The notes below the pieces were generated by a model. It did not search any database. It was not told the DNA's origin and worked only from the letters and a program-made list of their open reading frames with translations. Below, in pieces: positions 27,017-64,000 of a DNA stretch of 64,000 nucleotides. Made by a program: the position numbers and the translations under genes. Numbering within the stretch: position 1 is the first letter of the stretch; every line of letters starts with the position of its first letter. The DNA comes from Lepidodermella squamata. Lineage: Eukaryota; Animalia; Gastrotricha. The stretch is from positions 3,472,001 through 3,536,000 of the forward strand of contig JBLDXI010000029.1 in assembly GCA_047495785.1 (NCBI GenBank). The letters are read 5' to 3'.

Positions 27017-27046
27017 AATCTATCAAAAATTATTCGAATTATTTTT

Positions 27047-32876: not shown

Positions 32877-33754
32877 TCAATAGCGATTTGTCATGATGTA
32901 CAAATAGATGACATCGCAAACGAAAGCCGTAGTGCCGCAAATGCCCGCCATATAAATGTCGAGAATTCGAATTTTCGATAAACTTAAATGACCATACTTG
33001 CCGTTTCTGGTTTGCTTATCGACAGCTATCGGTAGAATTATGAGGGAATACAGTGTTAAGATGATGCCGCTGATGAATTTTATGACAACTATGTAGACCA
33101 GGTAGACGGGTTCCGAAGTGTGAGGAATTATTGAGAAAACAAGTGTTAGCAGGACTGAATTTCCCAATACGGCTGTGATTGCAAATGAAGCTCTAAAAAA
33201 AGAGAAAACAAGGAACATAAATAAAACATAACGAAACCTCCTCAAACTTATGAATGTTCATGGCATAATTTTTTAAAAATTGGCAAATTTATTGAAAAAT
33301 GATTAAAAATGAAGCTTCGATTTAAATACCTATCTGAATTTTGATTCGAAAATCAATTTATTTGATTTCACTTGAAAATTAAGGAGTAATTTTTAAAAAT
33401 TTTGATCATTTTTTAGGAATTTCAAATAAGTTTTTAGAATTGTATTTCAACCTATCTGGCAGTTCCGGAGGCATGGCCAGGCTGAAAACTTGAAGCAGAT
33501 ACGTAGCCATAGTTGGTATCAAAATATTAATGATGTAATACAAATATTTCCGCTTCAGACTTATCGTGAACTGCAACTGGGAGTATTGAATTCCGTTTTC
33601 ATTTGTGTATGTTATTTTCTCGAAATTCAACGAATCAGAAAGTTGATCATCCGCAAATTTCCAGATCTCTGAAGTGTCTAAAATTCCGCTTGAATTCATT
33701 GCTTCCAGCGGGCGGAAGCTGCGAGCTGAAAAATTGACCAAAATGTCAGCTTGA
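32877..33754 (-). pseudogene. Cys-loop receptor copy 2, 3' part (disrupted by the insertion)
   Basis: Paralog of 28204-29470; the frame continues at 63504 when 33755-63503 is removed. Confidence 0.9.
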
Positions 33755-34225: not shown

Positions 34226-36095
34226 AATCAGGCGTTGTCAGGCGAATCGAGTGCATTTTGAATGGTAACGCCATGACGTACAGCCGCGGAGATACACGTT
34301 AGAAACCAGTTTCGACGCACACACGCACCACAAAAGTGGTTCGGCTACGAACCATTTCTTTGGAAAATCACAGAAAAATCAATTTCGTTCCGATTTTTGC
34401 AAATCAAGTGTCATTTTAACAGGCGCAAAATTCCCTACAAACGCAGCCTGGTTTTCAGATGAACGCGAACGATAGCGTTGAGCGCGCTCATGAAAACGTT
34501 ATTTACAAGCCATTAAAAATACGCGAAGTAGTGCGCGCGCCTGTGTGTGCGAGCTTACGCCATGTAATACATTTTTTCTTTAATTATACGCACTCATAAA
34601 CAATAACCGCTGCTGAATCAGGCGTTGTCAGGCGAATCGAGTGCATTTTGAATGGTAACGCCATGACGTACAGCCGCGGAGATACACGTTAGAAACCAGT
34701 TTCGACGCACACACGCACCACAAAAGTGGTTCGGCTACGAACCATTTCTTTGGAAAATCACAGAAAAATCAATTTCGTTCCGATTTTTGCAAATCAAGTG
34801 TCATTTTAACAGGCGCAAAATTCCCTACAAACGCAGCCTGGTTTTCAGATGAACGCGAACGATAGCGTTGAGCGCGCTCATGAAAACGTTATTTACAAGC
34901 CATTAAAAATACGCGAAGTAGTGCGCGCGCCTGTGTGTGCGAGCTTACGCCATGTAATACATTTTTTCTTTAATTATACGCACTCATAAACAATAACCGC
35001 TGCTGAATCAGGCGTTGTCAGGCGAATCGAGTGCATTTTGAATGGTAACGCCATGACGTACAGCCGCGGAGATACACGTTAGAAACCAGTTTCGACGCAC
35101 ACACGCACCACAAAAGTGGTTCGGCTACGAACCATTTCTTTGGAAAATCACAGAAAAATCAATTTCGTTCCGATTTTTGCAAATCAAGTGTCATTTTAAC
35201 AGGCGCAAAATTCCCTACAAACGCAGCCTGGTTTTCAGATGAACGCGAACGATAGCGTTGAGCGCGCTCATGAAAACGTTATTTACAAGCCATTAAAAAT
35301 ACGCGAAGTAGTGCGCGCGCCTGTGTGTGCGAGCTTACGCCATGTAATACATTTTTTCTTTAATTATACGCACTCATAAACAATAACCGCTGCTGAATCA
35401 GGCGTTGTCAGGCGAATCGAGTGCATTTTGAATGGTAACGCCATGACGTACAGCCGCGGAGATACACGTTAGAAACCAGTTTTGACGCACACACGCACCA
35501 CAAAAGTGGTTCGGCTACGAACCATTTCTTTGGAAAATCACAGAAAAATCAATTTCGATCCGATTTTTGCAAATCAAGTGTCATTTTAACAGGCGCAAAA
35601 TTCCCTACAAACGCAGCCTGGTTTTCAGATGAACGCGAACGATAGCGTTGAGCGCGCTCATGAAAACGTTATTTACAAGCCATTAAAAATACGCGAAGTA
35701 GTGCGCGCGCCTGTGTGTGCGAGCTTACGCCATGTAATACATTTTTTCTTTAATTATACGCACTCATAAACAATAACCGCTGCTGAATCAGGCGTTGTCA
35801 GGCGAATCGAGTGCATTTTGAATGGTAACGCCATGACGTACAGCCGCGGAGATACACGTTAGAAACCAGTTTCGACGCACACACGCACCACAAAAGTGGT
35901 TCGGCTACGAACCATTTCTTTGGAAAATCACAGAAAAATCAATTTCGTTCCGATTTTTGCAAATCAAGTGTCATTTTAACAGGCGCAAAATTCCCTACAA
36001 ACGCAGCCTGGTTTTCAGATGAACGCGAACGATAGCGTTGAGCGCGCTCATGAAAACGTTATTTACAAGCCATTAAAAATACGCGAAGTTGTGCG
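34226..36095 (+). repeat. Tandem array 1, 390-bp unit, ~4.8 near-identical copies
   Basis: aatcaggcgttgtca recurs at 34226, 34616, 35006, 35396 and 35786. Confidence 0.97.
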
Positions 36096-36525
36096 CTTAC
36101 GGGAAGTAATAATTTTTACATTCGTTATCTATTTTCCCTCTTTCATCGTGTTGGATTTCTTTTATACGTTGTCTTGAGTACGTGTTGATTGTTTTTCATT
36201 TTTTTTGCTAGCATTGATGCTGAAATTCATGACATGACGTTATAATTGATGTTTCATCCGCTGACATTGCGTCACACCTGTATTCAAGGACAATACACCT
36301 GATAATTGATGAAGTCTTGTGTAATACAAGTCATCGATGTCGACCGGCGTATACTGACTCATGATGCAATTGTCGGCGGAGTGATCGTTTCTCGCCGTCT
36401 GGCGTTATATAAGCAGTTACTTTTACGCTCGATTTTCGTCTCCAAGTGCGGCGATTTCATTCAGCGAATCTTTTCTGAATTTTAAACGATTTAACACGAT
36501 TATCAACGTTTTAAACGACCATATC

Positions 36526-37695: not shown

Positions 37696-37889
37696 AACAG
37701 ACAAATCTCAGCTCGCATGTTGTTACTGCTTCCAATGATATCTTAAGACTAATCATATTGTTGTTTCATGATAATGACCTTGTGTTCTGTCAAATAAAAA
37801 CTCGAATTAGCCGAACTTTGTTCTTTTTAATTTATTACTATGAGTAATTTAAAAATTCGAAGCTTCCTATGGCAGAAGATAGCAATAGC

Positions 37890-38583
37890 GTCAGGCGAAT
37901 CGAGTGCATTTTGAATGGTAACGCCATGACGTACAGCCGCGGAGATACACGTTAGAAACCAGTTTCGACGCACACACGCACCACAAAAGTGGTTCGGCTA
38001 CGAACCATTTCTTTGGAAAATCACAGAAAAATCAATTTCGTTCCGATTTTTGCAAATCAAGTGTCATTTTAACAGGCGCAAAATTCCCTACAAACGCAGT
38101 CTGGTTGTCAAAGGAACCCCAGCGATAGCGTTGAGCGCGCTCAAACGAACGCTATTCACAAGCTAATAAAAATACGACAAGTTGCGCGCGCTAGTGTGTG
38201 CGAGATTTCGCCAAGTAATAATATTTTTTTTCAATTATTCGCACTCATAAACAATAACCGCTGCTGAATCAGGCGTTGTCAGGCGAATCAAGCGCATTTC
38301 GAATGGAAACGTTGTGATGTACAGCCGCGGAGATACACGTCAGAAACCAGTTTTGACGCACACACGCACCACAAAAGTGGTTCGGCTACGAACCATTTCT
38401 TTGGAAAATCACAGAAAAATCAATTTCGATCCGATTTTTGCAAATCAAGTGTCATTTTAACAGGCGCAAAATTCTCCACAAACGCAGTCTGGTTTTCAAA
38501 TAAACGCGAAAAAGAGCGATGAGCGCGCTCATATAAACGATATTTACAAGCCATTAAATCTTTGTGTGCCTGTGTGTGCGAGG
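37890..38583 (+). repeat. Tandem array 2, ~1.8 units, hybrid of the 390- and 398-bp variants
   Basis: First unit has the gtgcattttg..gttagaaacc variant; second has the gcgcatttcg..gtcagaaacc variant. Confidence 0.9.
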
Positions 38584-39496: not shown

Positions 39497-39816
39497 GAAA
39501 AACGGGCCACAAGAAAATTGGTGGGCCTGGAACGGACGTTTTTCATCAATTAGAAATGTAAAAAAGGCGATATCACCCCTTCCGTAGAGTTCCCCTCTGA
39601 AGAAGGGAACTTTACCGCCCCTCGTTCACGAAGTTCGAATACAATATAAACAAAGAAAGTATTTCATTCAACAGCACTTAAAAGTCGAACAAAAATGATG
39701 AGGGTGCATAAAAAGGAAGCACGGAGAAACTCGGCAGAAAAAATGGAGCCCTCGAACGGTTTGTGAGTGAGGCTGTAAAAAGCTGTTTGACAGTTGAAAC
39801 ATCGACAAATTGCTAA
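39497..39816 (-). repeat. Inverted internal copy of element A's 3' UTR/terminal module (pairs with 55501-55823)
   Basis: Reverse complement is alignable over ~320 bp including the gttccc..gggaac hairpin; the terminal CTGGA is not intact. Confidence 0.92.
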
Positions 39817-39824
39817 AGAGCAAT

Positions 39825-42800
39825 TCACTCGTGCGCAGGGCACGGCAGGTCATAAAAATCCCGATAGAAATCGGGCTCTGCGGCTTTCAGTTTCGTTAAC
39901 TGCGCCTTCAGCTTGTAAGCCTCATAGACAGGAAGGCCGCAGTCTAGAAATTTTTCCAGGCCGAGAAAGGCTCGGAACGTTGTGATTTTATTTTGTACAT
40001 ACTTCTTCTTGAACGTAAACCGTTCGTCGATATACTGGAAAAAATCTTTCTTCGATTTTATAAGCTTGTCAGCCTTAAGGCACTTGTAAATTTTTTCAAA
40101 TGCCTCGCCCATCAGCGATTCCTGTCTCAGGTGAAGTGATTTCAGATGAGCGGAAACCCGCTCCATGTTAGCGATGATCACAACTAAGCTTTCCGTGTCG
40201 TTGACGCCGTCGGAGTCCACGACGCCAACGTCGAAGGCCGTTTTAGTGGACCGGGTTTCCAGAAGAAGCCGTTTGAGTCCACTGATGGTACTGACATCGT
40301 ACTTCGTACCATTCGCCTGTCAAATCAAACACATGGTAATTATAATGAGGGTTTAAATACTGGGTTTAAATACCTCGAAGAAGTCAAGCGGCGTCCCCGC
40401 TTTTTTACGCGGTGTCTTGCTCGCCTTTTTGCCGTCTTCTTTCGTTTTAACGCTGTCAGAGTTAGCGCAATTCGCGGCCGCGCCGGCTTTTCTATGACCG
40501 ATTTTTCGACCGCCAGGAATGTCATGCTCCGTGACGAATTTGCGCACAGCCTCGATGAGGTTTTGCTGACGTTTGCTGCCGCTTTTAGGAAGATGGGAGC
40601 ACTCAGCAACGAATTGAACGGCTTTAGCCAGTACTTCAGGCGCATAACCGTCACCGACAGCTGGAAAGGAAAGTAAGTGGAACAGAAAATTCAAACTCGA
40701 TCCGATTTTTGCAAATCAAGTGTCATTTTAACAGGCGCAAAATTCTCCACAAACGCAGTCTGGTTGACAAATGAACCCCAACGATAGCGTTGAGCGCGCT
40801 CAAACGAACGCTATTCACAAGCTAATAATATTACGCAGAGTCGTGCGCGCGCTAGTGTGTGCGAGGTTACGTCTAGTAATGAAAATTTGTTAATTATTCG
40901 CATTTATTGGAGCCAGTTAACAATAACCGCTGCTGAATCAGGCGTTGTCAGGCGAATCGAGCGCATTTCGAATGGAAACGTTGTGATGTACAGCCGCGGA
41001 GATACACGTCAGAAACCAGTTTTGACGCACACACGCACCACAAAAGTGGTTCGGCTACGAACCATTTCTTTGGAAAATCACAGAAAAATCAATTTCGATC
41101 CGATTTTTGCAAATCAAGTGTCATTTTAACAGGCGCAAAATTCTCCACAAACGCAGTCTGGTTGACAAATGAACCCCAACGATAGCGTTGAGCGCGCTCA
41201 AACGAACGCTATTCACAAGCTAATAATATTACGCAGAGTCGTGCGCGCGCTAGTGTGTGCGAGGTTACGTCTAGTAATGAAAATGTGTTAATTATCCGCA
41301 TTTATTGGAGCCAGTTAACAATAACCGCTGCTGAATCAGGCGTTGTCAGGCGAATCGAGCGCATTTCGAATGGAAACGTTGTGATGTACAGCCGCGGAGA
41401 TACACGTCAGAAACCAGTTTTGACGCACACACGCACCACAAAAGTGGTTCGGCTACGAACCATTTCTTTGGAAAATCACAGAAAAATCAATTTCGATCCG
41501 ATTTTTGCAAATCAAGTGTCATTTTAACAGGCGCAAAATTCTCCACAAACGCAGTCTGGTTGACAAATGAACCCCAACGATAGCGTTGAGCGCGCTCAAA
41601 CGAACGCTATTCACAAGCTAATAATATTACGCAAAGTCGTGCGCGCGCTAGTGTGTGCGAGGTTACGTCTAGTAATGAAAATTTGTTAATTATCCGCATT
41701 TATTGGAGCCAGTTAACAATAACCGCTGCTGAATCAGGCGTTGTCAGGCGAATCGAGCGCATTTCGAATGGAAACGTTGTGATGTACAGCCGCGGAGATA
41801 CACGTCAGAAACCAGTTTTGACGCACACACGCACCACAAAAGTGGTTCGGCTACGAACCATTTCTTTGGAAAATCACAGAAAAATCAATTTCGATTTGAT
41901 TTTTGCAAATCAAGTGTCATTTTAACAGGCGCAAAATTCTCCACAAACGCAGTCTGGTTGACAAATGAACCCCAACGATAGCGTTGAGCGCGCTCAAACG
42001 AACGCTATTCACAAGCTAATAATATTACGCAGAGTCGTGCGCGCGCTAGTGTGTGCGAGGTTACGTCTAGTAATGAAAATGTGTTAATTATCCGCATTTA
42101 TTGGAGCCAGTTAACAATAACCGCTGCTGAATCAGGCGTTGTCAGGCGAATCGAGCGCATTTCGAATGGAAACGTTGTGATGTACAGCCGCGGAGATACA
42201 CGTCAGAAACCAGTTTTGACGCACACACGCACAACAAAAGTGGTTCGGCTACGAACCATTTCTTTGGAAAATCACAGAAAAATCAATTTCGATCCGATTT
42301 TTGCAAATCAAGTGTCATTTTAACAGGCGCAAAATTCTCCACAAACGCAGTCTGGTTGACAAATGAACCCCAACGATAGCGTTGAGCGCGCTCAAACGAA
42401 CGCTATTCACAAGCTAATAATATTACGCAAAGTCGTGCGCGCGCTAGTGTGTGCGAGGTTACGTCTAGTAATGAAAATTTGTTAATTATCCGCATTTATT
42501 GGAGCCAGTTAACAATAACCGCTGCTGAATCAGGCGTTGTCAGGCGAATCGAGCGCATTTCGAATGGAAACGTTGTGATGTACAGCCGCGGAGATACACG
42601 TCAGAAACCAGTTTTGACGCACACACGCACAACAAAAGTGGTTCGGCTACGAACCATTTCTTTGGAAAATCACAGAAAAATCAATTTCGATTTGATTTTT
42701 GCAAATCAAGTGTCATTTTAACAGGCGCAAAATTCTCCACAAACGCAGTCTGGTTGACAAATGAACCCCAACGATAGCGTTGAGCGCGCTCAAACGAACG

Positions 42801-44820
42801 CTATTCACAAGCTAATAATATTACGCAAAGTCGTGCGCGCGCTAGTGTGTGCGAGGTTACGTCTAGTAATGAAAATTTGTTAATTATCCGCATTTATTGG
42901 AGCCAGTTAACAATAACCGCTGCTGAATCAGGCGTTGTCAGGCGAATCGAGCGCATTTCGAATGGAAACGTTGTGATGTACAGCCGCGGAGATACACGTC
43001 AGAAACCAGTTTTGACGCACACACGCACCACAAAAGTGGTTCGGCTACGAACCATTTCTTTGGAAAATCACAGAAAAATCAATTTCGATCCGATTTTTGC
43101 AAATCAAGTGTCATTTTAACAGGCGCAAAATTCTCCACAAACGCAGTCTGGTTGACAAATGAACCCCAACGATAGCGTTGAGCGCGCTCAAACGAACGCT
43201 ATTCACAAGCTAATAATATTACGCAAAGTCGTGCGCGCGCTAGTGTGTGCGAGGTTACGTCTAGTAATGAAAATTTGTTAATTATCCGCATTTATTGGAG
43301 CCAGTTAACAATAACCGCTGCTGAATCAGGCGTTGTCAGGCGAATCGAGCGCATTTCGAATGGAAACGTTGTGATGTACAGCCGCGGAGATACACGTCAG
43401 AAACCAGTTTTGACGCACACACGCACCACAAAAGTGGTTCGGCTACGAACCATTTCTTTGGAAAATCACAGAAAAATCAATTTCGATTTGATTTTTGCAA
43501 ATCAAGTGTCATTTTAACAGGCGCAAAATTCTCCACAAACGCAGTCTGGTTGACAAATGAACCCCAACGATAGCGTTGAGCGCGCTCAAACGAACGCTAT
43601 TCACAAGCTAATAATATTACGCAGAGTCGTGCGCGCGCTAGTGTGTGCGAGGTTACGTCTAGTAATGAAAATTTGTTAATTATCCGCATTTATTGGAGCC
43701 AGTTAACAATAACCGCTGCTGAATCAGGCGTTGTCAGGCGAATCGAGCGCATTTCGAATGGAAACGTTGTGATGTACAGCCGCGGAGATACACGTCAGAA
43801 ACCAGTTTTGACGCACACACGCACCACAAAAGTGGTTCGGCTACGAACCATTTCTTTGGAAAATCACAGAAAAATCAATTTCGATCCGATTTTTGCAAAT
43901 CAAGTGTCATTTTAACAGGCGCAAAATTCTCCACAAACGCAGTCTGGTTGACAAATGAACCCCAACGATAGCGTTGAGCGCGCTCAAACGAACGCTATTC
44001 ACAAGCTAATAATATTACGCAGAGTCGTGCGCGCGCTAGTGTGTGCGAGGTTACGTCTAGTAATGAAAATTTGTTAATTATCCGCATTTATTGGAGCCAG
44101 TTAACAATAACCGCTGCTGAATCAGGCGTTGTCAGGCGAATCGAGCGCATTTCGAATGGAAACGTTGTGATGTACAGCCGCGGAGATACACGTCAGAAAC
44201 CAGTTTTGACGCACACACGCACAACAAAAGTGGTTCGGCTACGAACCATTTCTTTGGAAAATCACAGAAAAATCAATTTCGATCCGATTTTTGCAAATCA
44301 AGTGTCATTTTAACAGGCGCAAAATTCTCCACAAACGCAGTCTGGTTGACAAATGAACCCCAACGATAGCGTTGAGCGCGCTCAAACGAACGCTATTCAC
44401 AAGCTAATAATATTACGCAGAGTCGTGCGCGCGCTAGTGTGTGCGAGATTTCGCCAAGTAATAATATTTTTTTTCAATTATTCGCACTCATAAACAATAA
44501 CCGCAGCTGAATCAGGCGTTGTCACGCGAGTCAAGCGCATTTCGAATGGAAACGATGTGATGTACAGCCGCGGAGATACTCGTTAAAAAACCAGTTTCGA
44601 AGTGGCCAGGAACCATTCATGGCGTTTTTGGTGTTCATCATATTTTGTAACCCCATTAATAGAAATGAATTAACTAAGTTGAATCGTCACAGGAAACTAA
44701 CGTACCATTCGAAATTTCGCCATCTTCGACGGTGTTGGCCTCCGATCCTCCCGCCTCGCTGTCAGTCTCCATCATCACCTCATCATCACTTTCATAGTTT
44801 TCGGACATCGATTCGCTCAT
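39825..44820 (-). CDS. 297-aa accessory protein: acidic N-terminus, Lys-rich NLS-like middle, helical C-terminal domain (exons 44820-44706, 40660-40374, 40316-39825)
   Basis: Donors G|gtacgt and GAG|gtattt and acceptors ttccag and tgacag are phase-compatible, giving one open frame. Confidence 0.72.
40683..44600 (+). repeat. Tandem array 3, 398-bp unit, ~9.8 copies
   Basis: Equivalent positions at 40857, 41255, 41653 ... 44041 (period 398). Confidence 0.98.
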
Positions 44821-45792
44821 TTTCAAACTGCTCTATAATAGATTTAAATTATTTTATAAAATTGTTATTTAGTCGATAATGGACCAGTGAAACAACAAGT
44901 GAAACAACAGTAGAAATGCGCCAACAGAAAACGGTCATACAGTGCTGACTGCTACGTGTCTTTAATTTTCATCCTGTCGTGCAACAGCTGACTCTCAAAC
45001 AAATTTAATCTCAGCCCATATCAGCATGAACAGTCTTGCAGTCTTGTGGAACAGACTCAGCTGGCCCCAATTTTCCTGAGAGATTAGATGTCTGCAGTCC
45101 AGCTGTTGCTTTTGGTCCTAATTCTTTGCTCTAGTTCTTCTTGCTCGACTGGAGCATTCGTTACCTGTCCAGGGTGAAAGCCGGCGAAAGCTCTTTGTAG
45201 CTTTATAGCGAAGAAACAAACATGCTGCAAAGAAATAGCAAAAGGCTAAAAAATGCTTACACATGACACAACAGCCGTGATATATTAGAAAACAACATTT
45301 TTCTACATAATCGACATGAAGGCTGAATGAAGTACTGATTCCTGAAAGCATTTCCAGCTCCTGCAGATCGTTTATGCCTCCATCCAATTGTTAACTCTGT
45401 TCAACTGCCCTCCCTGACATATACAATATCAAGATATATCAATGTCTGGGCCTTTTAGATATTGTCGATTATAGACTGATCCTATTTGCTTACCATGCCT
45501 CCTGCGAAACTAAATGACCAAAATGCAAAACGCAATGCCTCGACGACTTCTGGTGCTCCTGTTGCCGATGCCACTACGAGTCAATCAACTTACTTGCACC
45601 CGGTACTTCGATTGCAAGACAATCGAATTTCACCCAAAAAACGCAACAAATTGTAGAAACAACGTTTCACAGATGGCAGCTACTATTCAGTATTCAGTTA
45701 CAAGCTTTCGCATCTTCAGCCATCATAAACTCAACTTGAGACTTGAGACTTACTGTTGTTCTCTTTGTTTTTAGATCTTAATTTCATCAATT

Positions 45793-46065
45793 ATGACGCA
45801 TTCCGCTGATGACTGCAATACAGATACTCCTACACCTACTACTGCTCGACCTATTCCACCAAAGCTGAACCATGATGACTCAGGAATAATGTATCTTAGA
45901 GGATTCCAGCACCTCAGTGAGCCTTACGACAGCTATCTCGTCAAGTATTGCTCCGGGAAAGAAACCAAATATATGCCTCTCTTGCACCACGTTTTTCTTG
46001 CCAGCACTGAGGTTTCGCCGTGGAAGCTTTTCTACACGACACACAGCCCCAAACCGAGTTCCTGA
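45793..46065 (+). other. Mini-ORF made of three scrambled Rep-derived peptides
   Basis: LNHDDSGIMYLRGFQHLSE, SYLVKYCSGKETKY and SPWKLFYT match the RepHel segments LNHNSSDMLYRRGFEHISE, SYLVKYCAGKEVRY and SPWQLFYT. Confidence 0.7.
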
Positions 46066-46278
46066 AGCTTTTTGTCTTTAATAAACTGGCTTAATAACTG
46101 GCTGTCATTAATAAACGTTACACTGTTCATCCCTGCGTGCTATAGTTTCAAATAAATATTCATCTAACTGATAAAATATATCCTAATGCTGATGACATTG
46201 TTATCTTCATCCATTGCCTTTGCATTTGCCTTTGTCCTTCAAATATAGATATATTTGATACAATATATAGATATAACA

Positions 46279-49200
46279 ATGTCTCGAAAAGACCCTTTCA
46301 AACCGCGTAAAGGCAATAGGACTTGCACTTGCAGCATCAAGGGATGTGGCCAAATTGGAGTCGATAGGCGGACACATTGCTATGTCTGTGAGAAGCATCA
46401 TGAAAAGCCGTTTTGTCGCATTTCTACACCCGTGTTGAACGATCAAACACCTGCCACGTCCGTTCCTCACGTTGAATCTACTCATTCATGTATTAACTTT
46501 ACAATCAGCCGTACATATTTGAATTTTTGTAGCTTTAGCTGCTACCGCGATCCCGCCAAGGAGATCATATGCTGAAGTGTTGACAGCACATCAATGCCCC
46601 GATAGTTCTCCAAGCGCTGAAAAACTCATGCGCCCTGATGGCCGCAACTCTGCATCATATCTAAATCCTGAAGATTCAAGTTACTTTCTGGCTTGCAGGA
46701 AATTCAAAGATACAACTTTATTTTTACTATTTTAGCCATTACCACTGCGCATTTCGATGATTGCGGCGAAGCCGTTCCTAATGAAGCGCTGCCGTCCTCA
46801 AGCTTTTCGTCCTCTTCTAACACGGAGTGGTTACGCGAAGCAGCAAGGCTCAACCATCTGCAGCTTGTCGACAATGTTGGCAGGGGTGATTGCCAGTTTT
46901 TATCCGTCAGTGATGCTGCAAGGCAGCATGGGTTCAAGTACTCCTTCCTTGAATTAAGGAAGCTGGCGCAACAGCAGCTGCTCACCCGCGCGTATGACTC
47001 TTTTATCGCGCCTGACCCGTTAGTCCTTCAACAAGCGAGAAATAATGGGCAGCCATTGCCTTCGACCACTCCTGATGAGCTCGTACGACGTATAGCTCTG
47101 CCTGCTGCCGAGAATGGAGACTGGGGTGACAACGTTTCCCTCCGGGCACTGGCGGATAGCTTAAATGTCACAATAGCATTATTCGACTCCGAAAACAGGT
47201 TTACATTGCAGCGCTTTGGCAGTGTTGGTCCGACTCTCTATATTGGTAGAGATCATTTGGCTTCGCATTATGTGGCTATGCTGAGAGACGAAACGCCCAT
47301 GTTTCAACTTTCTTCTTCCGTCGACAACCGATCAACAACTTCTGTGATAGACGAAGTTGGAAGAGATTCTACTAATAACATCTCTTGCTTCGAAGCGGGA
47401 ACTTCGTCAATTCAAACAACTGGCGCGGCCTCCTTTTCTGCTGGGCAGCCCATTAGCCCACCAAACTTAGGAATAAATTCTTCCAAAGTTACATGTCAGT
47501 CAAATGGAAATAGCAACCACAATCCTTCGCGTCATAAAAAATCAGGTCAGTTTCATATTTCGGCCTTTATTAATTCCTTCGTCAATGCACTTTTATAGAT
47601 GAAATTGCCGCAATTAATGAAGACCAAGATCTTCCTCCTTTGTCTCCTACTGAAATATCATCCACTTCACTCAGTCGCAGGCGCGCAGTCGCAGTCGCAG
47701 GCGCAGTCCAGTCTCAAACTAGAAAAGAAGTTGGCCCAACCAGATCAACAACTTCTTCAAAAATGAGTAACCAGGATCGTATTACTGCGGACACAACCAG
47801 TAAGTCTTCCACCTACTTAACAATGTCAATTTTTAGTTCAGTCGTTATTAATGCTCATAATAAAGCTACTTCAAAACAAGATGCTGCCTCTGATCAACCT
47901 CAGTGTTCTCTATGCAGAAGAAACGCTACTTCTTTTTATCCTCTGGCACTACAGATAATCTGTGAGGAAGTAACGGTGAAGAAGTACGGTGCACTAGCTC
48001 TGCGATCGAAACATCGAAACCTTGTTTTGTGCAACTGCTGCGAACTTCATTTGCTGAAAGAAAACAAAGCGCTGTCGTTCGAGGACGCGTGGCCTGCGGT
48101 ATTGTATTCTATTTTTTTCGACGACAAATATCGGGAGGTAGCTGAACACCTCAAGCACATTGTTCCTTCGACGATACGGCAATCTTGGGCTGTTGAAATT
48201 GGCAAAACAGGGCGCGATCTTATGACAGCAGAGGAGCCTTACTTCACTGATGTCAGCGATTACTATCACAACATGGAGGAGCGAGCTTACCGATCTGCTG
48301 GTATGAAAGCATTGCATCTTTATTTTTAAAAGCATATCCCTTTCATACAGGTGCGTTTCGACGTCAGATGGACGACTTTTGTTGCCCCCAGGTGAAGTGT
48401 GCTCTTGGGTGCTGGAACTGGCCTGAGTTTTGTCGCAAGATCCCGGTCAATCACCTAATTAACCACCTTACACGCTTGCGCATCGGCAACTCTAACCACC
48501 GGTTGCTAACAGCTGCCCGACGTGACTATCCGAATAAACCTAGCATATTTCGCGGCTGGAAAATTTCGCCTGCAATGGTCGTCGACAGATCACTCGGCTT
48601 ATGCTTTCTTGTATGTGATGGTCATAACGACGCTGAATTGAAGAAGCGATTTTTTCACATTCCGATAAATCCCGCTCACGACGACACTCTTCCACAACAG
48701 CTCGAAATCGTTGCACCGGTTGTTACAAGTCCGAACATTGTTAGAAAAGGCAGACTTGGTACGTACTCCTCATCAGTTCCAGTAGTTTCAGTCGTTGGCG
48801 GGTATCAAGGATTGAGTAGCTTTACTATGTCCCCGACGGTGAACACTCCACCGATCAGTGGCGATTCGATAGCACCGCAATTGATGGCTGCTTATCTACG
48901 TCCAGAGATTCAGCGAAGCTTTGCAGCAAAATGTGATATATTTCATGTTTCGACTCTATTGGCTGCCTTCCAATCCCAATATGACGCTCTGAAATCGCTA
49001 GCCGATGCGGCGCTGGAAGGAGCAACGTTTATGGATGTAGCGGATGCTTTTCATACGTGGGCCATAATCCGAAAGGACGCAGTCGGGCCTAGTGGCGCTG
49101 TTCCAAATAACAACAACGACTTGAATAAGCAGTCTATCAAAGAGCTTATTATTAACGCTGTCCACAACGCTGACGATTTCGGCATGAGACCCACGGCTGT

Positions 49201-52200
49201 AAAGCTCCGCTCTCCTAACGAAAGGGTTTCACTGTTTCAAAATATATTAAATGCATTGCTCCACTGTCGACCAGTGCATAGAAACGCGCTTTCACATCAT
49301 GTAACATCAAGCGGATTTCGAATCGGGAATTTGCCCTCCATCAAACTTCTATCTATGGCTTCGTATATTTCTGCCGATCAGCCGACAGCGATAAATGCAC
49401 GGGCCTTTAGCAACCAGCTCTGGCTGGCAAACGATGAACACAAAAATACCGTGGACAACACGCTAAATATCTTGACATCACTCTGTCCAAAAATAGTTGA
49501 TGACGAATTGAATCATACTGGCAGCGAAATCATCGACGTTCAACTGCGCATTGGGATAGACGAGTCTTCGCAACAACGCATTTCCAGGAGCACTTCCAGA
49601 CAAGGTACTATTCTACGTTTCATTGATATAGCGCCCTTTTCACGTCCATGCAACTTATTGATAGAATATTACTTTTCTGCATGCATACATCTCACCGTCT
49701 TTATTTCTCTCTCCGTCAGGTTCAAGCAGTCATCTGGTTGTCAACATCAATGATGAGGAGATCGCTTTGTCATCATACAAGCCAAACGCCGATATCACTT
49801 TCTGCAAGGCTGATTCTTCTCAAAAAATTTCTACTTCCAACTTTCCTCTTTACGTCAATGGTTCGCATCTTCTGTACTTACAAATCGAGTTACCTCGCTC
49901 TGATGGCGATCGTCCTGCAAGCAAGGTCCTGATGAGGTGGAACGGCGACTTTAATGGTTGGTGGTCGATCAACTGCAACGGTGATGTTACCAAAGAGACA
50001 CAACTATCCGCTGTTACTGGGAATGTTTTGTACGCGATTTATGCCACACCTGGCGACAGGTCTTTTGAGCACCGAGCAATACTGTCATCAATTGGTGGTC
50101 AACGAATTGCTGTCTGCAAATCTCATGTACTTAAACACGATGGCAACGGTTTTATCAAAGTGCCGCGACAACTAGCCGTTAAATGTTGCGCAATTTTGCG
50201 ACGCGGACGACGTCCTTTACAGTGTGGGAAAATGGCGTATCTCAGGTGTCCAGATGGTATTCAGCATGGCCTAACCTGCCAGTCAGGCATCTGCAACGAC
50301 TGCTATGGCAAATTATCTCGGGACAAGTCGCATCGAATAGGTCAGCCGTCAGCCGTCAGGGCTAAAAATTACCGTCAACGCCGTCGGCAATTGACGGACG
50401 ATGAAGACGGCGTTGATCCGAGCATTTCCATTGAAGAAGAAAGACGGCTGCGAGGCGAGCCGGAACTTGAAGACCCACTGCAAGTAGAACCTTTGCCGGT
50501 GGTTTGGAACGAAGATTGCCAAACGGATAACGATGTTTTGTTGAACGAAGTTATCGACCAAGAAGAAGCTCTTCCGTCCACAATGACGTTAACAAATCCC
50601 CATTCTAAGATTCCCAGTAAGTATCTGCTTACAAATTATTTTCGTATACTGGAGCGAAGGCGTGCTCCACATCAAAGTGCACGTTCTCATTTTCTGCTGC
50701 AACAAATCGTACGTGCGGGAAATGCACCCGCTTCATCACTGCTATTCCCGGAGGCTAACACTCTGCCATCGATATTTTACAATTCTTACAAAAAATCAGT
50801 CCCTGGAGCTTTACCTCACCACCTGTATTGTTCGCCGGATTCTAACAAATTTCGTGGTATTGCTAGCTTGAGTGCTCACAACAAAGTGCGAGTAGCTGAC
50901 GGTGATTTAGCATCGTCGAGAACTTGGCAATCTCTTCACTGGGCTTTTGACACTACCGTTGCTGAGAAACTCAATCACAACAGTTCCGATATGTTGTATC
51001 GTCGAGGATTCGAGCACATTAGCGAACGAGGCGGATTTGGTATCGATGCCGCTCAAACTGCCCTCGAGTATGATGATTTCGACTCGTCGCGCAAAATCAA
51101 GGAGCTTGCGGCGACTATGAAGGCGTCCCCCTGGCAACTGTTCTATACATTTACTGCCAACGACAGAGGCTCTCCGGGTTTGAGGCCATTCATCAATCGT
51201 TTGAAGATTGCTTCTCAGCTGACAACACCAGCCACTGCCGAAGACAGAACCAATTACACCTTGAAGCAGCGTGAAGTTGATGCCTTGGAAATAGATGACA
51301 AATTGTTCCAGCAGCTCTACGAGTCTAATTTCTTTCTTATCAACAGCATTTGGCGGCGAACTATCTATCACGCGATTCGGTTCATTGAAAAAAGCCCGTC
51401 TAAGTTGTTGGGAGAAATCGACTCGCATTTTTCTCGTATCGAATTCCAAAGTCAAGGATCGCTGGGGAACAAATGCCATGTACATGGTGGTGTGTCAGTA
51501 AAAAGCCGTGACGGCGACGAACCCGTATCTCATAAGATTTGCCTTGATCCTGATCTGTTCTTTTCCGAACAATTCGGCACTGATTACGATTCCTTGCTGA
51601 AGGATGGCCTCGTCGAGGACTATGACGACTTCGAAGATCTTCGAAAGTTTATGGCCGTTGTTACGCGTCACGTTTGCTCCAATGCTGGTGAAAGGTGCCT
51701 TAAGCAGCGAGGCGAGAACGGCGAGGAGATATGCAGAGTTCGAGCACACCCGAACAGCGAAGAATACTGGTACGAAGAAAAGCTCGACCTATATGAGGAA
51801 TCGGTGTATGAGAAACTTGAGTCTTGTGGTTTAGCTGAACGTATCCCTGACTCTGCTGAGGGTCATGTCAAATGGCGATTAAAGCATGACAAACTAAAAG
51901 CAGGCGTTCATCATTATCCTCTTCGCAACCAAGAATGCGGCGTTAAAATGTTGCCTACAATACCTCTTTTCGCCATCATGATGCGCTGTTCAAGCAACAT
52001 TCAAGCGTGTGACGAACGTTTCATGGTTAGCTACCTCGTCAAGTACTGTGCCGGAAAAGAAGTACGATACAACCCATCCGTAAAAGCTACCAAACACGTG
52101 AGTGAAGTTGTTATTGATTCGGCTAAAGCACCTTTGCCCAATCTAAAAATTACTGGCGTCGCTCTTAACGAAGAAAAGCGTCAAAAAGCGCTCACTAACG

Positions 52201-55200
52201 TCATTCAGACGAACATGATGGAGGTAGCTACAACGGAAATGCATTGGGTGGTTGCAGGCTTCCCGTATACATATACTAACGTCGACCACGTTCATGTTAA
52301 CACTCAACCGCCGGAACATCGATTGGCTTATAAATCTAGAGCCCCACGGACAAAGCTTCAACCAGGTAGGACTTCAGCTCTCACAAATAAAACTTGTCAA
52401 ATAATGTTATTTCAGGTGTCGATGCATCCTTCGATCCTAATGCCGCACGCTACAAACTCAACCAAATATGGCGTTTGTTTACAGTCGATCAAATACAGTT
52501 GGCACGAGAATACGTCATGTCAAAGTTGAGGCCAGGTGCTACTGAGCGGTTCAACATAAGACCGCCTGAGCTACTGATCTTTGACAACCTCGAGATTTTC
52601 CACCTCATATTCATTGCGTCAACTGAAACAGCTAAGCTTCCGCTGCATGAAACATTTCATCTTTCACCGTTCAAAGATGCGCTCAATCGATATTATCGAA
52701 TTCGCAGCAACAGTATACTGGCGGCAATTCAGTTCTTGCGAACGAGGCCTGCAGATCATCCTGCCCGACAGCTACTGCTTGACCTTTTCGAAAGGCTCTG
52801 TGAAGGCGATCAGGAACTCACAAAGCGATACGTACATCAAACAAACGCTGTTCGAACAGTTACTGTCCCGTCAAGTGTGACACCCTACAATCGTCAGAAA
52901 TTTTTGTATCACACGATTATGACTTTGGGCTCCATGGAGAATGAGTTGCAAACCTTTTCTTCGTCTAACTTCGCCGTCAACTTCACGAATGCGCGCCTCG
53001 TTACTCCTCCGGAGGAGTTCGACGGTGCGCTAGTTCAGCCATCTTTGCGTGCGGAGGTTGATGACATTTTTCGCCGTCTCATCATTGAGCAACTTGTTTG
53101 GTTACCCGTTTCCGCAAAGAGGCTCGGCAACTATATCACCAAAACTTGGGAAACTCTTCAAGACTACTTCTTTGGTTCGCACAGCAATGATCACGATGTG
53201 CCACCTATTTCCAGTTACGCTCTCAAGAGCCAAGCCAACAAGAAAATTTTCGACGCTGAGCGGATCTTTAAAGACAGCTTGCTTCAAACAAGCCATGCTC
53301 AACTGGCGCATAAAATGATCCTACCTTCTATAGACTTGTTTCGCAGTGCAATGCCTGAAAATCCTGTCGAATGGAAACCTGCTATTCTGCCTTCGACAGG
53401 CTTGTTTCCTTTAGCTTTTTAAATTCTATTTTTATGTTCACTGTTCACAGGTCAGTCTTCTGAATCATTGAAACAACAGCAGTTAGCCCTCAGCCATGGC
53501 TTGAACAAGATTGACGATCTGTTGTGCCATCGAAGTGCCTACAAGCATTCTGTTTTTGTCGGCCCACCAGGCGCTGGTAAAACCTTCTTGGCTCAAGTTG
53601 CTGCTCTGTACGCACTTGGCAAAGGCTTCAACGTTTGCCTCACGTCGCTCACATCGGAGAGAGCAAGATCGCTTGGAGGCCGTCATCTTCATCTTGTTTT
53701 TCCGATGCGTGTCCAGCAATCGTCCTACTCGCACGCCATGTTAGAGGCACAGGAATGCATCCGATCGCTCGGCAGAGACCCCGTTAAGGCAGAGTTACTA
53801 TACAGAACCGATGTGTTCGTGATCGAAGAAATCGGCTTGGTCTCCGCCGAGATGTATGCATTACTAGACGCTGTCATGAAATATGTCATGGGAAATGACT
53901 TAAAGTTTGGTGGCAAGCTGGTTATCGCTACCGGTGATCACGCTCAGCTGCAGCCAATCAATGGTAGGCCTTTCTGGCTGTCAACCAACTTGATGTTTTC
54001 TTTCGACGTCGTTGTGCTAACTCATTACGTTCGTTCCGCCGAAGACGAAAACCTCCAAGCAATCCTTCAAATCCTTCGACAGCCAATCATCGACGAGCGA
54101 CAGCGAAACGTTGTCTGTCACGTTTTGTCACAGAAGGCACGCTTTTTTCCTTCATGGGATAAGGTGCCTGAAGGCTTGATTCGTCTCGTTACAACTCGCA
54201 GCGCGGAGAAGAAAGTAATCGACGATTACCTCGAGAAAAAATCACAGCAAACCGATGTCATCAAATGTCTAGCTATCGACGAGTTTCAGAGAAGTTCGGA
54301 CAACTGGACGGAGACGACGAACAAGGCGCACATAAAGAAACTTGATCGTGTTTGCTTGGAGCCCAAAGAACTGGTGCTTTTTCTCGGGGAAATTGTCTGC
54401 ATGACTTACAATAACATCGCGTCAGATCCTGGTCAGACTTTCTCGCAGGGGCAGCTTGGTGTTATTGTTTGTCTACCTGAAGACATCGCCAACAAGAAAG
54501 CGACTGTTTCTGTTCGCCTGATTCCACCAGGTATTCGCCCGTCGCATGATGTTGACGAGAATTGGCCGGTTATCAAAGTGCAGCGACATCATGGAATACC
54601 CATTATCATCGGGTCAGACGCCATGCGAGCTCGACGGTTACAGTTCCCCTTCCGTTACTACATCTGCACCACGGTGCATCGGATAATGGGCGCAACCGTC
54701 GAGGAAGGTGTTGCCATACAAATATCGGACGTCGACAAACAGTTTCGAATGTGGGAGAAGGCTCAGTTTCTTGTGATGGTTTCTCGCTGCCGTTCGCTAA
54801 ATCTCATCGCCTTCGTGAGTGCTAGCAAAAACGACACCCTGAGAGCGATCAATGCCATCATGATGAAGGATAGCCCATATGAAAAGGCTGTTGTTGACCG
54901 GTTGTGTCGATTGGATATACTGTCTAATCGCGCAGAATCGGTTGACGTTGGCTCGCCGGTTTTTTATGTCACCAATTCAATCTCGCCCTCTGTTGTGAAC
55001 GGTGTAGTCTACCACATCGTTTCCCAAACAAGACCGTTCGCGTCTTACATCGGCGAAACAATGTTCTCAGCTGAAAAGAGACTCAGGCAACATAATTCTG
55101 GCGGTGGCGCTAATTTCACGCGTGGTGATACGTGGTTCCTTCTTGGTATCGTACATGGATTTTCTGATGCGCGAGCGCGAAAGACGTTTGAGAACAAGGT

Positions 55201-55477
55201 TCACAGGCGACTAACTCCACAGCTTTTCCCTTGGCAAGTCCGTCTCGTCATTCAGGAGCTTGTTGTTCAGCTGAACAAGTTGGTGCCTGCTTCACAGCAA
55301 CTGACCATCGTCAACTTCGGCCGGGTCGACGAATTGCAAGTTCGTGCGTTAGCGGCGAATCGCAACCAATCTGGACCTTTCGTTTTTATCAAACAGGTTT
55401 CTTCACTTTGCCTTACTTCTTCAGCTTCTTAATTTTTACTTACACTACAGGATGAAAGCGGCGAAGACGATTTATGA
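46279..55477 (+). CDS. RepHel transposase, ~2,900 aa: Cys/His-rich N-terminus, OTU protease, Cys-rich regions, HUH Rep, PIF1-family helicase, SLX1-like GIY-YIG nuclease
   Basis: OTU GRGDCQF..WGD..HY; Rep motifs LFYTFTAN, RIEFQ..G..HVHG, YLVKY; helicase GPPGAGKT, IEEIG, FGG..GDHAQLQP, TVHRIMG.T, QFLVMVSR; nuclease VY..YIGET..RLRQHN.G.GA..T..W..GF..FE. Phase-consistent exons 46736-47545, 47599-48300, 48351-49604, 49720-52365, 52416-53399 (GC donor), 53451-55396, 55451-55477; the first two exons are less certain. Confidence 0.92.
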
Positions 55478-55689
55478 GACGATTTTCTTTTACTATGTCA
55501 TTAGCAATTTGTCGGTGTTTCAACTGTCAAGCAGCTTTTTACAGCCTCACTTATGAAACGTTCGAGGGCTCATTTTTTTCTGACGAGTTGCTCCGTGCTT
55601 CCTTTTGATGCACCCTCATCATTTTTGTTCCACTTACAACTGCTGTTGAATAAAATACTTTCTTTCTTTATATTGTATTCGAACTTCGT

Positions 55690-55827
55690 GAGGGAGGGGC
55701 GGTTAAGTTCCCTTCTTCAGAGGGGAACTCTACGGAAGGGGTGATATCGACTTTTTTTTTACATTTGTTACTGATGAAAAACGTCCGTTCCAGGCCCACC
55801 AATTTTCTTGTGGCCCGTTTTTCTGGA
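55690..55827 (+). other. 3' terminal module of element A
   Basis: gggaggggcg, hairpin 55707-55728, aaggggtg..gacttt, a small subterminal hairpin, then CCGTTTTTCTGGA; homologous to 63343-63503. Confidence 0.8.
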
Positions 55828-61882: not shown

Positions 61883-62242
61883 ATGCGAGACCTCGCACCT
61901 ATCAAACCTCGAGAGGGCAAAAGTAGCACGTGCAATGTTGCTGGGTGTAATGTAGATGGCGACTTGGCTACATCTCATTATTGGGACGCTGTCAACTTAG
62001 CCTTCGATATCTCTTCTAATGAACGCCTGAACCACAACAGCGCTGACATGTTGTATCGACGAGGGTACGAATCTATAAGTGAAGAAGGTGGCTTTGGGGT
62101 CGATGGTGCCCAGAGAACATTGGAATATTATGACGATTACGGCTCATCGCAGAAAATAAAGGAGCTGGCGGCTTCAATGAAAAGTGCTCAAATCTCTCTT
62201 TTCTACACGTTTACGGCTGAGGAAAGTGGATCCCCTGGGTAA
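61883..62242 (+). pseudogene. Internally deleted RepHel remnant of element B
   Basis: PIKPREGKSSTCNVAGC (compare PFKPRKGNRTCTCSIKGC) fused in frame to DGDLA..LNHNSADMLYRRG..LFYTFTA..GSPG. Confidence 0.85.
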
Positions 62243-63503
62243 CACCACTCAAATTAGCCGGCCAATTATGAGTACCGAGTCCGGATCCTTCAAAGGTTAC
62301 GAGTGAATAACGAGTCGAGCCACCGATCGAATCGTCTTTTCTGTTTATGCAAGATGCCATTAAATTTTTTGCTTCGGAAAATCATTGTTATATGTCGAAT
62401 TCGGGGACGATGTCTAAATAAAAATGTCCACCACGTTTCCTGATAATTTAATTTGTGTAATTATTTATCTCGACTTATTTTGTTTCGTCCCCAGACCGGC
62501 ACGAAATAAGCTGAAATGTGCTGGTTTCATCAGCTGAAATACGTTGTAATAAGGCATGGCTAGTTCGTCGCCGCTGAAATACGCTGGAGCCGATTTCTGG
62601 GATGCGCACTTTTCAGCCGATTTTCGTCAAGCGATGTTGATTTTCTATCCATCAACTCACTGCGCTGAAATACGCTGAAAAAAGCACGTGGCGACATCGA
62701 CAAGCTAAAATACGCTCATATCCGTAAGACGCATTGCGCGAAATTCAAATCGGTTTTCCAGGACTTGGCAGTTGGCAGACGCTGAGTTTCAGTTTATTTT
62801 CCGTACAATTTCAGCTTGATTAATTTTTAGCTGGAAATTGCTGGAGTTTTACGCTAACGCAGTAGCTCTCAAACTATCTTCGCTCGCGGTCAAAAATGGC
62901 GGCCGGCTGACGACCTTCCCGGCCGCATTGCCTCTTGAACCCTCAACCGGCTGCTTGATAATGATAAAATAGGACCTTCCCGGCCGCACGCCTGTATAAT
63001 CGAGGATCGAGGATTGAAGTTTTCGAGTGCGCTTTTGAGCGGATTGGTTATTAAATTAGTAGCATCAGTAGCATCAGCATCAGCAGCATTTTTATCTTTT
63101 GTTTTTTATGGCTCTCTGCCGATTCATCCTTCTATGTGCTCATTAAACGCGAACGCACGGATTATTATGTTTGCGCCTGAAGATTTTTATTGGGGGTAAT
63201 TAAGGTGCGCGCCGTCGCCGTTAACTGGGTCACTCGACCCAGAAGATGAGAACTAAAGCAATAATTTAAAACGATATCGACAGTGAATATTCTCGCTCGC
63301 AAATTAATTTTTTTCAGAATATTTCACATGTATTTATTTTTGGGGAGGGGCGATTGAATGTTCCCCTTGAAGATGACCCACAAGGGGAACTGCAAGGGGT
63401 GGTTGACTTTGAACCCTTGTGGAACATTTCTATTGGGCCCAGCGCCAAGCTGCCAGATACTAAAAAAATTCACGCAAGATTTCCTTGCATCCGTTTTCCT
63501 GGA

Positions 63504-64000
63504 TTCGGCTCGAAAATCAGCGTGCAGTCAAGCTTATCGAAAGGAAACATCTCAAATTTGAACGACTGGCATTTGGTGTCAATGCGCCGAATTCCTACGT
63601 ACAGACCACGTGGCGGTGTCGAGATAGAAAATGGTGTTATCGTTATCTCATCGCCGCCTTCGATATCGAAAGGCAGAGGATTCTTCACCGCGTTAAGGTG
63701 GCTCAGGTAAGGATGCCAGTAACTTTTAGCTTCAACGTAAAATTGAACTTTATCGAGACCATATTTATAGTTGCATAATTTAGCGAGTTCCGGGTGATTT
63801 TCGGCCATTTGCCAGCAGTTCATAACGGGGCATGGGTAGTTCCATGAGAATATGAAATAGACAAAAATTGACAGCGTTTTCGCGAGATCGTTGATTTCGA
63901 GTATTCGAACAAGTAGTAGGGTCAAGTCTATTTTAAATGGATCACGAAATTCGTTGAGAACTCCATTTTCAAAGGGCAAATTAAGGACTCGAACGGGTGG
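63504..64000 (-). pseudogene. Cys-loop receptor copy 2, 5' part (extracellular domain; continues beyond the window)
   Basis: High identity to 29470-29960; contains CQSFKFEMFPFDKLDC. Confidence 0.9.

Follow-up and report, generated by a model that had tools for sequence, protein, structure and literature searches.

We analyzed a 64,000-nucleotide stretch of the genome of the gastrotrich Lepidodermella squamata (contig JBLDXI010000029.1, positions 3,472,001 to 3,536,000, forward strand; hereafter the window). Six open reading frames (ORFs) lie nearly end to end on its plus strand, from 46693 to 55432, and apparently make up the transposase gene of a Helitron-like element. The last of them, ORF 53468-55432 (+, 654 aa), encodes a PIF1 helicase and then, in one frame, a GIY-YIG nuclease domain.

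The transposase gene and the affinity of its nuclease domain

Pfam recognizes the nuclease as GIY-YIG (PF01541) over aa 512-580 of this ORF, with an E of 3.4e-7 and 30.9 bits against a curated cut-off of 22.6. The original prediction, which was made from the letters alone, had seen a GIY-YIG peptide with the expected Tyr, Arg and Glu in the helicase exon. That peptide, GVVYHIVS ... KTFE, occupies nt 55001-55192 (aa 512-575), within the span 54990-55260 originally given for it, and all of these residues are present; position 54990 is out of frame with the ORF, and the stops read from there are due to that alone. The catalytic core extends from 55001 to 55207 (+) and contains the motifs GVVY, YIGET, RLRQHN, GGANFT, W, VHGF and FE. 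The catalytic set is complete in the window copy and spans 55010-55192: Tyr515 (55010-12), Tyr527 (55046-48) with Gly529, Arg538 (55079-81), His542 (55091-93) and Glu575 (55190-92). Because a profile of the family matches SLX1 structures at an E of 8.9e-17, the match is far beyond chance, and the domain is confirmed as a GIY-YIG nuclease domain.

The core belongs to a C-terminal module of aa 489-654 plus the stop codon (54932-55432, +), delimited with AlphaFold models and Foldseek. It consists, in order, of a conserved proline-rich lead-in, the core, a helix/beta-hairpin/helix extension and a disordered tail, and no zinc finger was found in it. The PIF1-type superfamily 1 helicase (53552-54697, +) has a Walker A motif GPPGAGKT (53561-84) and the motifs EEIG (53819-45), GDxxQLxP (53933-56), SQGQ (54440-63) and TVHR (54671-97). 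Pfam PF05970 (PIF1) matches aa 29-165 of the ORF with an E of 6e-12, and the best sequence match in the PDB is Helraiser, the bat Helitron transposase (7lcc, E 4e-7). No stop and no frame change lie between the helicase motifs and the nuclease motifs, and the predicted in-frame fusion to the C-terminus of the helicase of a Rep/helicase (RepHel) transposase was borne out, both domains being in the same ORF.

The six ORFs could be joined by removal of five short introns, which gave a spliced model of 2,806 codons with no internal stop. The introns are candidates from a scan for frame-joining introns, with one good candidate per junction, and the model leaves the start codon and any further 5' exon unfixed. 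The first exon (46693-47545, +, as are all that follow) encodes an OTU protease at 46882-47238 (PF02338, E 7.7e-5). The exons at 47599-48300 and 48351-49604 come next, and this whole upstream part (46693-49604) is colinear with the single-ORF relatives P0159 and P0031. A zinc-finger region and the HUH Rep, assigned by the Rep motifs, are in the exon at 49720-52365, and the conserved Rep-to-helicase linker (WRxFT ... RPPEL) is in the exon at 52416-53399, which is colinear in tblastn with relatives P0037, P0017 and P0023. The proposed last exon, 53451-55432, follows from the ORF list and the intron model and contains the helicase and the GIY-YIG domain uninterrupted, so that 'helicase exon' was an apt term. 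The proposed introns, all on the plus strand, are 47546-47598 (53 nt; CAG/GTCAGT ... TTTTATAG, the slash marking the exon border), 48301-48350 (50 nt, GT-AG), 49605-49719 (115 nt, GT-AG), 52366-52415 (50 nt, phase 1, GT-AG; CAG/GTAGGA ... TTATTTCAG/GT) and 53400-53450 (51 nt, GC-AG).

The Rep region contains motif 1, FYTFTANDR (51141-67, +), the HUH motif CHVHG (51471-97, +) and the two-Tyr motif SYLVKYCAG (52026-61, +). The Pfam model Helitron_like_N matches the window weakly (E 0.014), but 8 of the 18 full-length relatives pass it. The Rep ORF alone had no match in the PDB; a 19-sequence Rep profile searched against the whole PDB matched only Helraiser (E 3e-4), with the HUH and YxxxY motifs aligned. 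Relatives of 2,400-2,800 aa that are encoded by a single ORF align colinearly with the window ORFs. Rep and helicase, which are linked across two short introns in the window, form a single ORF in the relatives, and in intron-less relatives the GIY-YIG domain is within the same uninterrupted ORF as the rest of the transposase. The window gene apparently encodes an intact polyprotein of ~2,800 aa, with an OTU protease, a zinc-finger region, a HUH Rep, a PIF1 helicase and a GIY-YIG domain.

The fifth candidate intron contains a TAA at 53420, the sole in-frame stop between the joined ORFs. We read 53400-53450 as an intron because its removal joins ORFs of the same frame and because homologues lack exactly those ~16 residues. 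If the stop in the helicase frame were real, and its enclosing intron with the GC donor were not, the window copy would be a young pseudogene, a state that may coexist with any function of the family; the undefined start codon and the presence of one full copy and one 3' fragment in the window also fit such a relic. We consider this improbable, since five candidate introns of 50-115 nt turn six ORFs into a stop-free reading frame, every catalytic motif of Rep, helicase and nuclease is intact, and the residues of the stop-holding intron are lacking in homologues. The copy looks intact, with the GC donor and the undefined start codon as caveats.

The domain had been assigned to the SLX1/UPF0213 nucleases. 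From one sequence the branch is ambiguous: the single window domain found only marginal matches in the PDB, both bacterial UPF0213 proteins (E 0.05-0.14). Relatives retrieved with the whole ORF were used to build family profiles of 5 and 61 sequences. The 5-sequence profile ranked C. glabrata Slx1 (4xlg, E 2.3e-6) above UPF0213. With the 61-sequence profile, SLX1 structures were matched at E 8.9e-17, 2.2e-15 and 1.4e-12 (64, 60 and 51 bits) and At-HIGLE, a plant nuclease of the SLX1 lineage, at E 1.9e-13 (54 bits), and UPF0213 proteins stood ~30 bits below SLX1 (E 5e-7 and 2.5e-6; 33 and 31 bits). The next GIY-YIG enzyme, T4 endonuclease II, was not significant (E 0.33, 14 bits), and UvrC and I-TevI were absent from the match list of this profile against the PDB.

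Structure prediction of the C-terminal region agreed with the profiles. AlphaFold models had a confidence (predicted local distance difference test, pLDDT) of 78 with the 5-sequence input and 88 with the 61-sequence input, and in both the sheet and helices of a GIY-YIG domain are accompanied by a confident helix/hairpin/helix extension. In the model of pLDDT 88, strands at 25-31, 37-43 and 68-75 and helices at 47-55 and 80-93 make up the alpha/beta GIY-YIG fold with its three-stranded sheet. When either model was compared with the PDB by Foldseek, the top 11 matches were all SLX1 or HIGLE chains with a probability of 1.0; the TM-scores are only ~0.5 because these targets also contain the RING domain. 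Hpy188I and a 5-hydroxymethylcytosine-specific restriction enzyme appeared in the Foldseek lists only, at a non-significant E of ~1-3. Among viral models, the best Foldseek matches were giant-virus proteins annotated as GIY-YIG or 'structure-specific endonuclease subunit'.

In the alignment with C. glabrata Slx1, Tyr515, Tyr527, Arg538 and His542 of the window fall on Y14, Y26, R36 and H40. Glu575 falls on position 79, which is Glu in yeast 7cq2 and Gln in the 4xlg chain, which we take to be the E79Q catalytic mutant. By profile and predicted fold, the nuclease domain belongs to the SLX1/UPF0213 branch, and at the level of the family it stands clearly nearer to eukaryotic SLX1 than to UPF0213.

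Only one Cys and one His occur among the 79 residues that follow Glu575, and no conserved Cys/His pattern was found after the core in the family consensus, so that the family has no SLX1 RING/PHD-type finger. The name 'SLX1-type' stands for the nuclease domain and fails for the whole protein, which lacks the RING finger by which SLX1 proteins are defined. These features suggest that the domain originated as a host SLX1 nuclease domain minus its regulatory RING finger. Two other identities were rejected. A bona fide SLX1 gene would have the RING finger and would not be fused to RepHel. A Penelope-type nuclease would have a CCHH motif, and its partner enzyme would not be RepHel; the stretch between GIY and YIG in the window domain, HIVSQTRPFAS, has no Cys at all.

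Relatives and descent of the fusion

In an exhaustive profile search over 1.84 billion cluster representatives, a GIY-YIG domain of this family turned up in 1,159 proteins at an E at or below 1e-3, and in 249 at or below 1e-10. Many of the 1,159 are RepHel proteins of 1,800-3,600 aa with the GIY-YIG domain at the extreme C-terminus, and in 71 of 75 genuine matches of at least 450 aa it lies no more than 60 aa from that end. Among the 18 full-length relatives, the GIY-YIG domain was detected in all 18, PIF1 in 16, Helitron_like_N in 8, OTU in 3 and Ulp1 in 1, and APE and DUF6570 in none. Relatives were found with the whole ORF or by the exhaustive profile search; a word-indexed search with aa 480-654 only returned none. 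Likewise tblastn with the domain alone missed two loci (L008 and L009) in which direct translation shows it. A search with nothing but a helicase motif led to three metagenomic loci, and both of those that extend far enough encode the nuclease directly after the helicase. No relative was found among 2.9 million viral contigs scanned.

Two members come from named animals. One is an 'uncharacterized protein' of 2,532 aa in the tunicate Styela clava (XP_039257388.1), and the other, from the ostracod Cyprideis torosa (P0001), is annotated as an 'unnamed protein product', and its gene model cuts the GIY-YIG domain short. In P0001 a low-complexity repeat replaces the second half of the domain; the genomic DNA (L001, CAJPEW010004914.1, 1299-3000) encodes a complete core. 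The same contig carries, at 9819-8224 and in opposite orientation, the OTU-to-zinc-finger part of a second copy. The remaining members are from metagenome or run assemblies, and several are annotated only as 'predicted GIY-YIG superfamily endonuclease'. Some of the metagenomic relatives are on contigs of 0.3-1.4 Mb in which gene calls are sparse, as expected of eukaryotic DNA.

The ENA assembly ERZ25074608 contains at least four copies of one element (L002 717-26503, L005, L006 and L007) that are 98.6-99.5% identical over ~25.8 kb, a sign of recent amplification; its RepHel-GIY-YIG protein is a single ORF of 2,455 aa. The sequence CGCTAGGTGGTC stands at both similarity boundaries of these copies, and their flanks look like the ends of related elements. 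This context suggests a tandem or nested insertion, or a repeated target, and the boundaries of the 25.8-kb family are ambiguous, the flanks themselves being end-like. Two further loci, L003 and L004, are the same locus and gave no element boundaries. In some lineages an Ulp1-type cysteine protease (Peptidase_C48) follows the GIY-YIG domain in place of the N-terminal OTU (P0063 aa 434-601, P0103 aa ~2480-2660, and P0160), so that the nuclease seems to be accompanied repeatedly by a protease of ubiquitin/SUMO type.

We then considered whether the fusion is old or was captured repeatedly. The two catalytic Tyr, the Arg and the His are invariant or nearly so in the full-length relatives, and the Glu is kept in 16 of 18; each of the five catalytic residues is present in 16-18 of 18, in lineages that share only 21-33% identity overall. 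In 43 non-redundant proteins, the pairwise distances of helicase and nuclease correlate with a Mantel r of 0.66, which none of 2,000 permutations reached; relatedness alone inflates such values, and that relatedness is the very point under test. The mean divergence of the two domains is alike (0.67 for the helicase, 0.69 for the nuclease). Joint divergence together with the retained catalytic residues argues for one old fusion and joint descent under purifying selection, not for repeated capture and decay. The sequence comparison thus points to the GIY-YIG tail being an old, selected fusion.

These data bear directly on the idea that the domain is a passenger, a captured fragment of a host gene that does nothing in transposition. 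Capture of host gene fragments is frequent among Helitron-like elements, and the nearest structural relatives of the domain are host SLX1 proteins; in the brief mention of a Sphagnum element in the HELIANO paper (PMC11417382), its GIY-YIG domain is called captured. Captured fragments are normally lineage-specific and decaying, however, whereas this domain is always in frame and in the same position, retains its catalytic residues at 21-33% identity, and diverges with the helicase and no faster than it does. We therefore regard a passenger as very improbable.

The ends of the element and its neighbours

The 3' terminal region of the element is at 55498-55823 (+). These 326 nt recur inverted at 39497-39819 (-) with 91-96% identity, in a second 3'-end copy devoid of the coding region, with arrays of a 390/398-bp satellite on either side. 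The similarity of the two copies breaks abruptly at 55823 and at 39497, the same base in both, after a hairpin (~55776-55823) and the terminus ...GTGGCCCGTTTTTC, and for this reason we place the 3' terminus of the element at 55823. It reads ...GTTTTTC. The hairpin has a DNA folding energy of -8.4 kcal/mol with a z of only -2.0, and it ends 8 nt, the closing segment of the stem, before the similarity break seen in the two 3' ends compared. The flanks beyond the two ends begin with TGG and GGT, and no common target was seen at these two junctions. The 39497-39819 copy is probably a non-autonomous relative of the element. The satellite arrays (34226-36229, 37879-38566 and 40682-44563) flank this inverted fragment and contain two variants that are ~90% similar to each other; inside any one array the copies are 98-100% identical.

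A 5' end and terminal inverted repeats were not found by an inverted-repeat scan of 44300-46800 or by comparison of exact 10-mers and of 13-mers with one mismatch against 20000-47000. Canonical Helitrons (HLE1) have the termini 5'-TC ... CTRR-3' and insert between A and T, and HLE2 elements have short (sub)terminal inverted repeats and insert in TT. The CTRR of HLE1 is not at the 3' end ...GTGGCCCGTTTTTC. No Exo_endo_phos (APE) match was found in the window ORFs or in the 18 relatives. DUF6570 upstream of Rep is proposed as an HLE2 marker in PMC11417382; it was not found in the window ORFs at an E at or below 0.1 or in the 18 relatives at an E at or below 0.01, a very divergent version being possible. 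Set against HLE1 and HLE2 by features only, the element is a divergent Helitron-like element with Helentron-like traits, namely the OTU, the C-terminal nuclease, a putative 3' palindrome and a satellite-bearing partner.

Two other pieces of Rep-like sequence are near the element. A short ORF just upstream of it (45793-46065, +) has Rep-like motifs out of their proper order, with YLVKYCSGKE ahead of SPWKLFYT, and could be what rearrangement has left of a related copy. The fragment at 61955-62353 (+) resembles the Rep region of two relatives, P0037 and P0023, with an identity of 34-38%, which suggests another, degraded Helitron-like copy.

The rest of the window contains genes of host type. A Glyco_transf_6 ORF at 27047-27634 (E 1e-33) is repeated ~4.7 kb apart at 80-92% identity within 26011-33700, and an ORF at 29149-30027 for the ligand-binding part of a neurotransmitter-gated channel is repeated at 84% at 63495-64000. 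Such locally duplicated host-type genes (26011-33700 and 63470-64000) indicate an animal genome. Three sets of minus-strand ORFs, at 7404-9252, 12331-14382 and 17830-19667, are spaced ~5.1-5.3 kb apart and have a 79-nt conserved block in common. No Pfam match was found for them, and they are a tandemly duplicated gene family.

Possible role of the nuclease and likeness to known systems

The cutting and joining activity of HUH Rep enzymes is confined to single-stranded DNA, and in Helitron transposition one strand is nicked and unwound and a single-stranded or circular copy is inserted. We propose, with a probability of about one half and by analogy with known enzymes, that the GIY-YIG tail is an accessory nuclease for transposition that would cut the strand or branch that Rep cannot. 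Rep would cut only the single-stranded DNA at the element ends, and the 5'-3' PIF1-type helicase, carrying the tethered nuclease, would make forks and displaced strands. The nuclease would then nick the complementary strand or the branch point beyond Rep, at the donor fork or flap or, alternatively, at the three-way junction where the single-stranded copy has been joined into one target strand. The nick would provide a 3'-OH primer for synthesis of the complementary strand, and the intermediate would be resolved. This proposed job is the one presumed for the APE at the same position in Helentrons. The original prediction had the element resolving its own branched intermediates; such cleavage is a plausible and reasonable hypothesis, not a result.

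SLX1 requires SLX4 for its activity in fungi and animals and binds it through the RING finger, and At-HIGLE is a nuclease of the SLX1 lineage that acts without SLX4. Having no RING finger, the window domain presumably works without SLX4. SLX1 itself is described as a promiscuous structure-selective endonuclease that cuts near the branch points of flaps, forks and junctions (PMC9071465).

Several points weigh against an accessory nuclease of this kind. The step of transposition at which it would act is pure inference, and with the SLX4-binding RING finger missing, activity or regulation may differ from that of SLX1. To our knowledge the function of the Helentron APE has never been established, so that the analogy explains little, and canonical Helitrons such as Helraiser transpose without an extra nuclease. 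As for the window copy, its 5' end was not located, and the GC donor of the intron that encloses the stop codon could be a mutated one, in which case this copy might be defective.

The main rival is that the nuclease nicks the intact duplex of the target, perhaps with some site preference, and so opens the target for Rep or primes the second strand, for which the APE of long interspersed nuclear elements offers a comparison. It is a GIY-YIG endonuclease that lets Penelope-like elements integrate within chromosomes (PMC8557442), the position at the C-terminus is that of the Helentron APE (PMC4067079), and CGCTAGGTGGTC at both boundaries of the ~25.8-kb family could reflect a site preference. 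The window domain, in contrast, is of the SLX1 lineage and not of the homing or Penelope lineage, it has no CCHH motif, no DNA-binding module comes after it, and no common target is seen at the only two 3' junctions in the window. Target nicking is possible, and we think it rather unlikely.

A function other than cleavage for integration could be the processing of a circular intermediate, the cutting of host or competing DNA, or an interplay with repair regulated by ubiquitin or SUMO. The cysteine proteases that accompany the nuclease (OTU in the window and in 3 of 18 relatives, Ulp1 directly after GIY-YIG in P0063 and P0103) would fit the last of these. A nuclease joined to a transposase is nevertheless most simply read as taking part in the breakage and joining of DNA, and we consider such other functions unlikely.

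A wider picture can be drawn, which we offer tentatively and would not ourselves favour on present evidence. RepHel with an SLX1-derived GIY-YIG domain could be an ancient and widespread third architectural lineage beside the nuclease-less Helitrons and the APE Helentrons. A nuclease would then have come to occupy this position in at least two independent recruitments, which would point to a mechanistic requirement, and the domain would be a structure-selective nuclease independent of SLX4.

Apart from that picture, an unrelated second nuclease fold at the same place, selected in hundreds of diverged elements, argues that the activity matters and not the particular domain. The 'convergent nuclease swap' relative to APE-bearing Helentrons that had been suggested is plausible. 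There is a parallel in retrotransposons, which use APE, restriction-like or GIY-YIG nucleases interchangeably. The catalytic domain is small and well understood, and point mutants of Tyr, Arg and Glu could be used in a transposition assay. Knowledge of the architecture would also improve transposon annotation in animal genomes and eukaryotic metagenome bins, where database labels are now 'predicted GIY-YIG superfamily endonuclease' or 'uncharacterized protein'.

The element is of a known kind, a Helitron-like element with an accessory nuclease fused to its helicase. Its apparent novelty lies in the assignment of the nuclease to the SLX1 type, in the fusion being in frame, in the occurrence in animals, and in how large, old and conserved the lineage is. 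Full-text literature searches for Helitron or Helentron with GIY-YIG or SLX1 (Repbase and subscription journals lay outside them) returned one relevant statement, a sentence on HelenSM92 that is discussed below. The mention in the original prediction of GIY-YIG-bearing Helitrons in algae could not be substantiated: no algal report was found, and the Chlamydomonas paper uses the GIY-YIG label for Penelope-like elements. The accessory domains described in the major accessible Helitron papers are RPA, OTU and APE only, and the term GIY-YIG does not occur in an evolutionary study of Helitron helicases (PMC8788227).

As enzymes, SLX1 (4xlg, 7cq2 and 6sei) and At-HIGLE (7wme) gave the best profile and fold matches to the window family. 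They have the same motifs (Y..YIG.T, RRLRQHN, G..T, PW, GF and FE.W), and the catalytic Tyr, Arg, His and Glu are aligned. The window family differs in having no C-terminal RING/PHD finger, hence no evident SLX4-binding surface, and in being fused to a transposase, whereas SLX1 and HIGLE are free repair proteins; identity in the structural alignments is ~20-26%. UPF0213/YhbQ proteins (1zg2 and 1ywl) are of the same GIY-YIG sub-branch and likewise consist of the nuclease domain only, without a RING finger, but they are stand-alone proteins of ~100 aa and score ~30 bits below SLX1 with the family profile.

Among mobile elements, Penelope-like elements also have a GIY-YIG nuclease fused, usually C-terminally, to the replication enzyme of a eukaryotic element. 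Their endonucleases group with those of the homing type and are marked by a CCHH motif that places two Cys between GIY and YIG (PMC8557442), whereas the corresponding stretch of the window domain has no Cys and the partner is RepHel instead of a reverse transcriptase. The one published precedent found is HelenSM92, an HLE2 family of the moss Sphagnum magellanicum, for which the HELIANO paper (PMC11417382; preprint 10.1101/2024.02.08.579435) mentions a 'captured' GIY-YIG domain in one sentence. By that sentence it is a Helitron-like element with GIY-YIG beside RepHel. The main text of PMC11417382 does not describe the GIY-YIG subtype, a fusion to the helicase or the conservation of the domain, and GIY-YIG is not among the recurrent accessory domains listed there.

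The closest likeness in architecture is to Helentrons (HLE2), in which an APE domain is fused C-terminally to Rep/helicase (PMC4067079), and the GIY-YIG domain of the window sits, as had been proposed, where Helentrons carry APE. Both have an extra endonuclease C-terminal to the helicase and OTU coding capacity, both have a palindrome a few bases from the 3' end, putative in the window (PMC4067079), and both have a non-autonomous partner with tandem repeats, probable in the window and known as HINE/DINE-1 in Helentrons (PMC4067079). In the window element DUF6570 was not detected and subterminal inverted repeats were not found in the stretches scanned, and its nuclease differs from that of Helentrons in kind, being an SLX1-type GIY-YIG domain whose fold is unrelated to that of APE (Exo_endo_phos).

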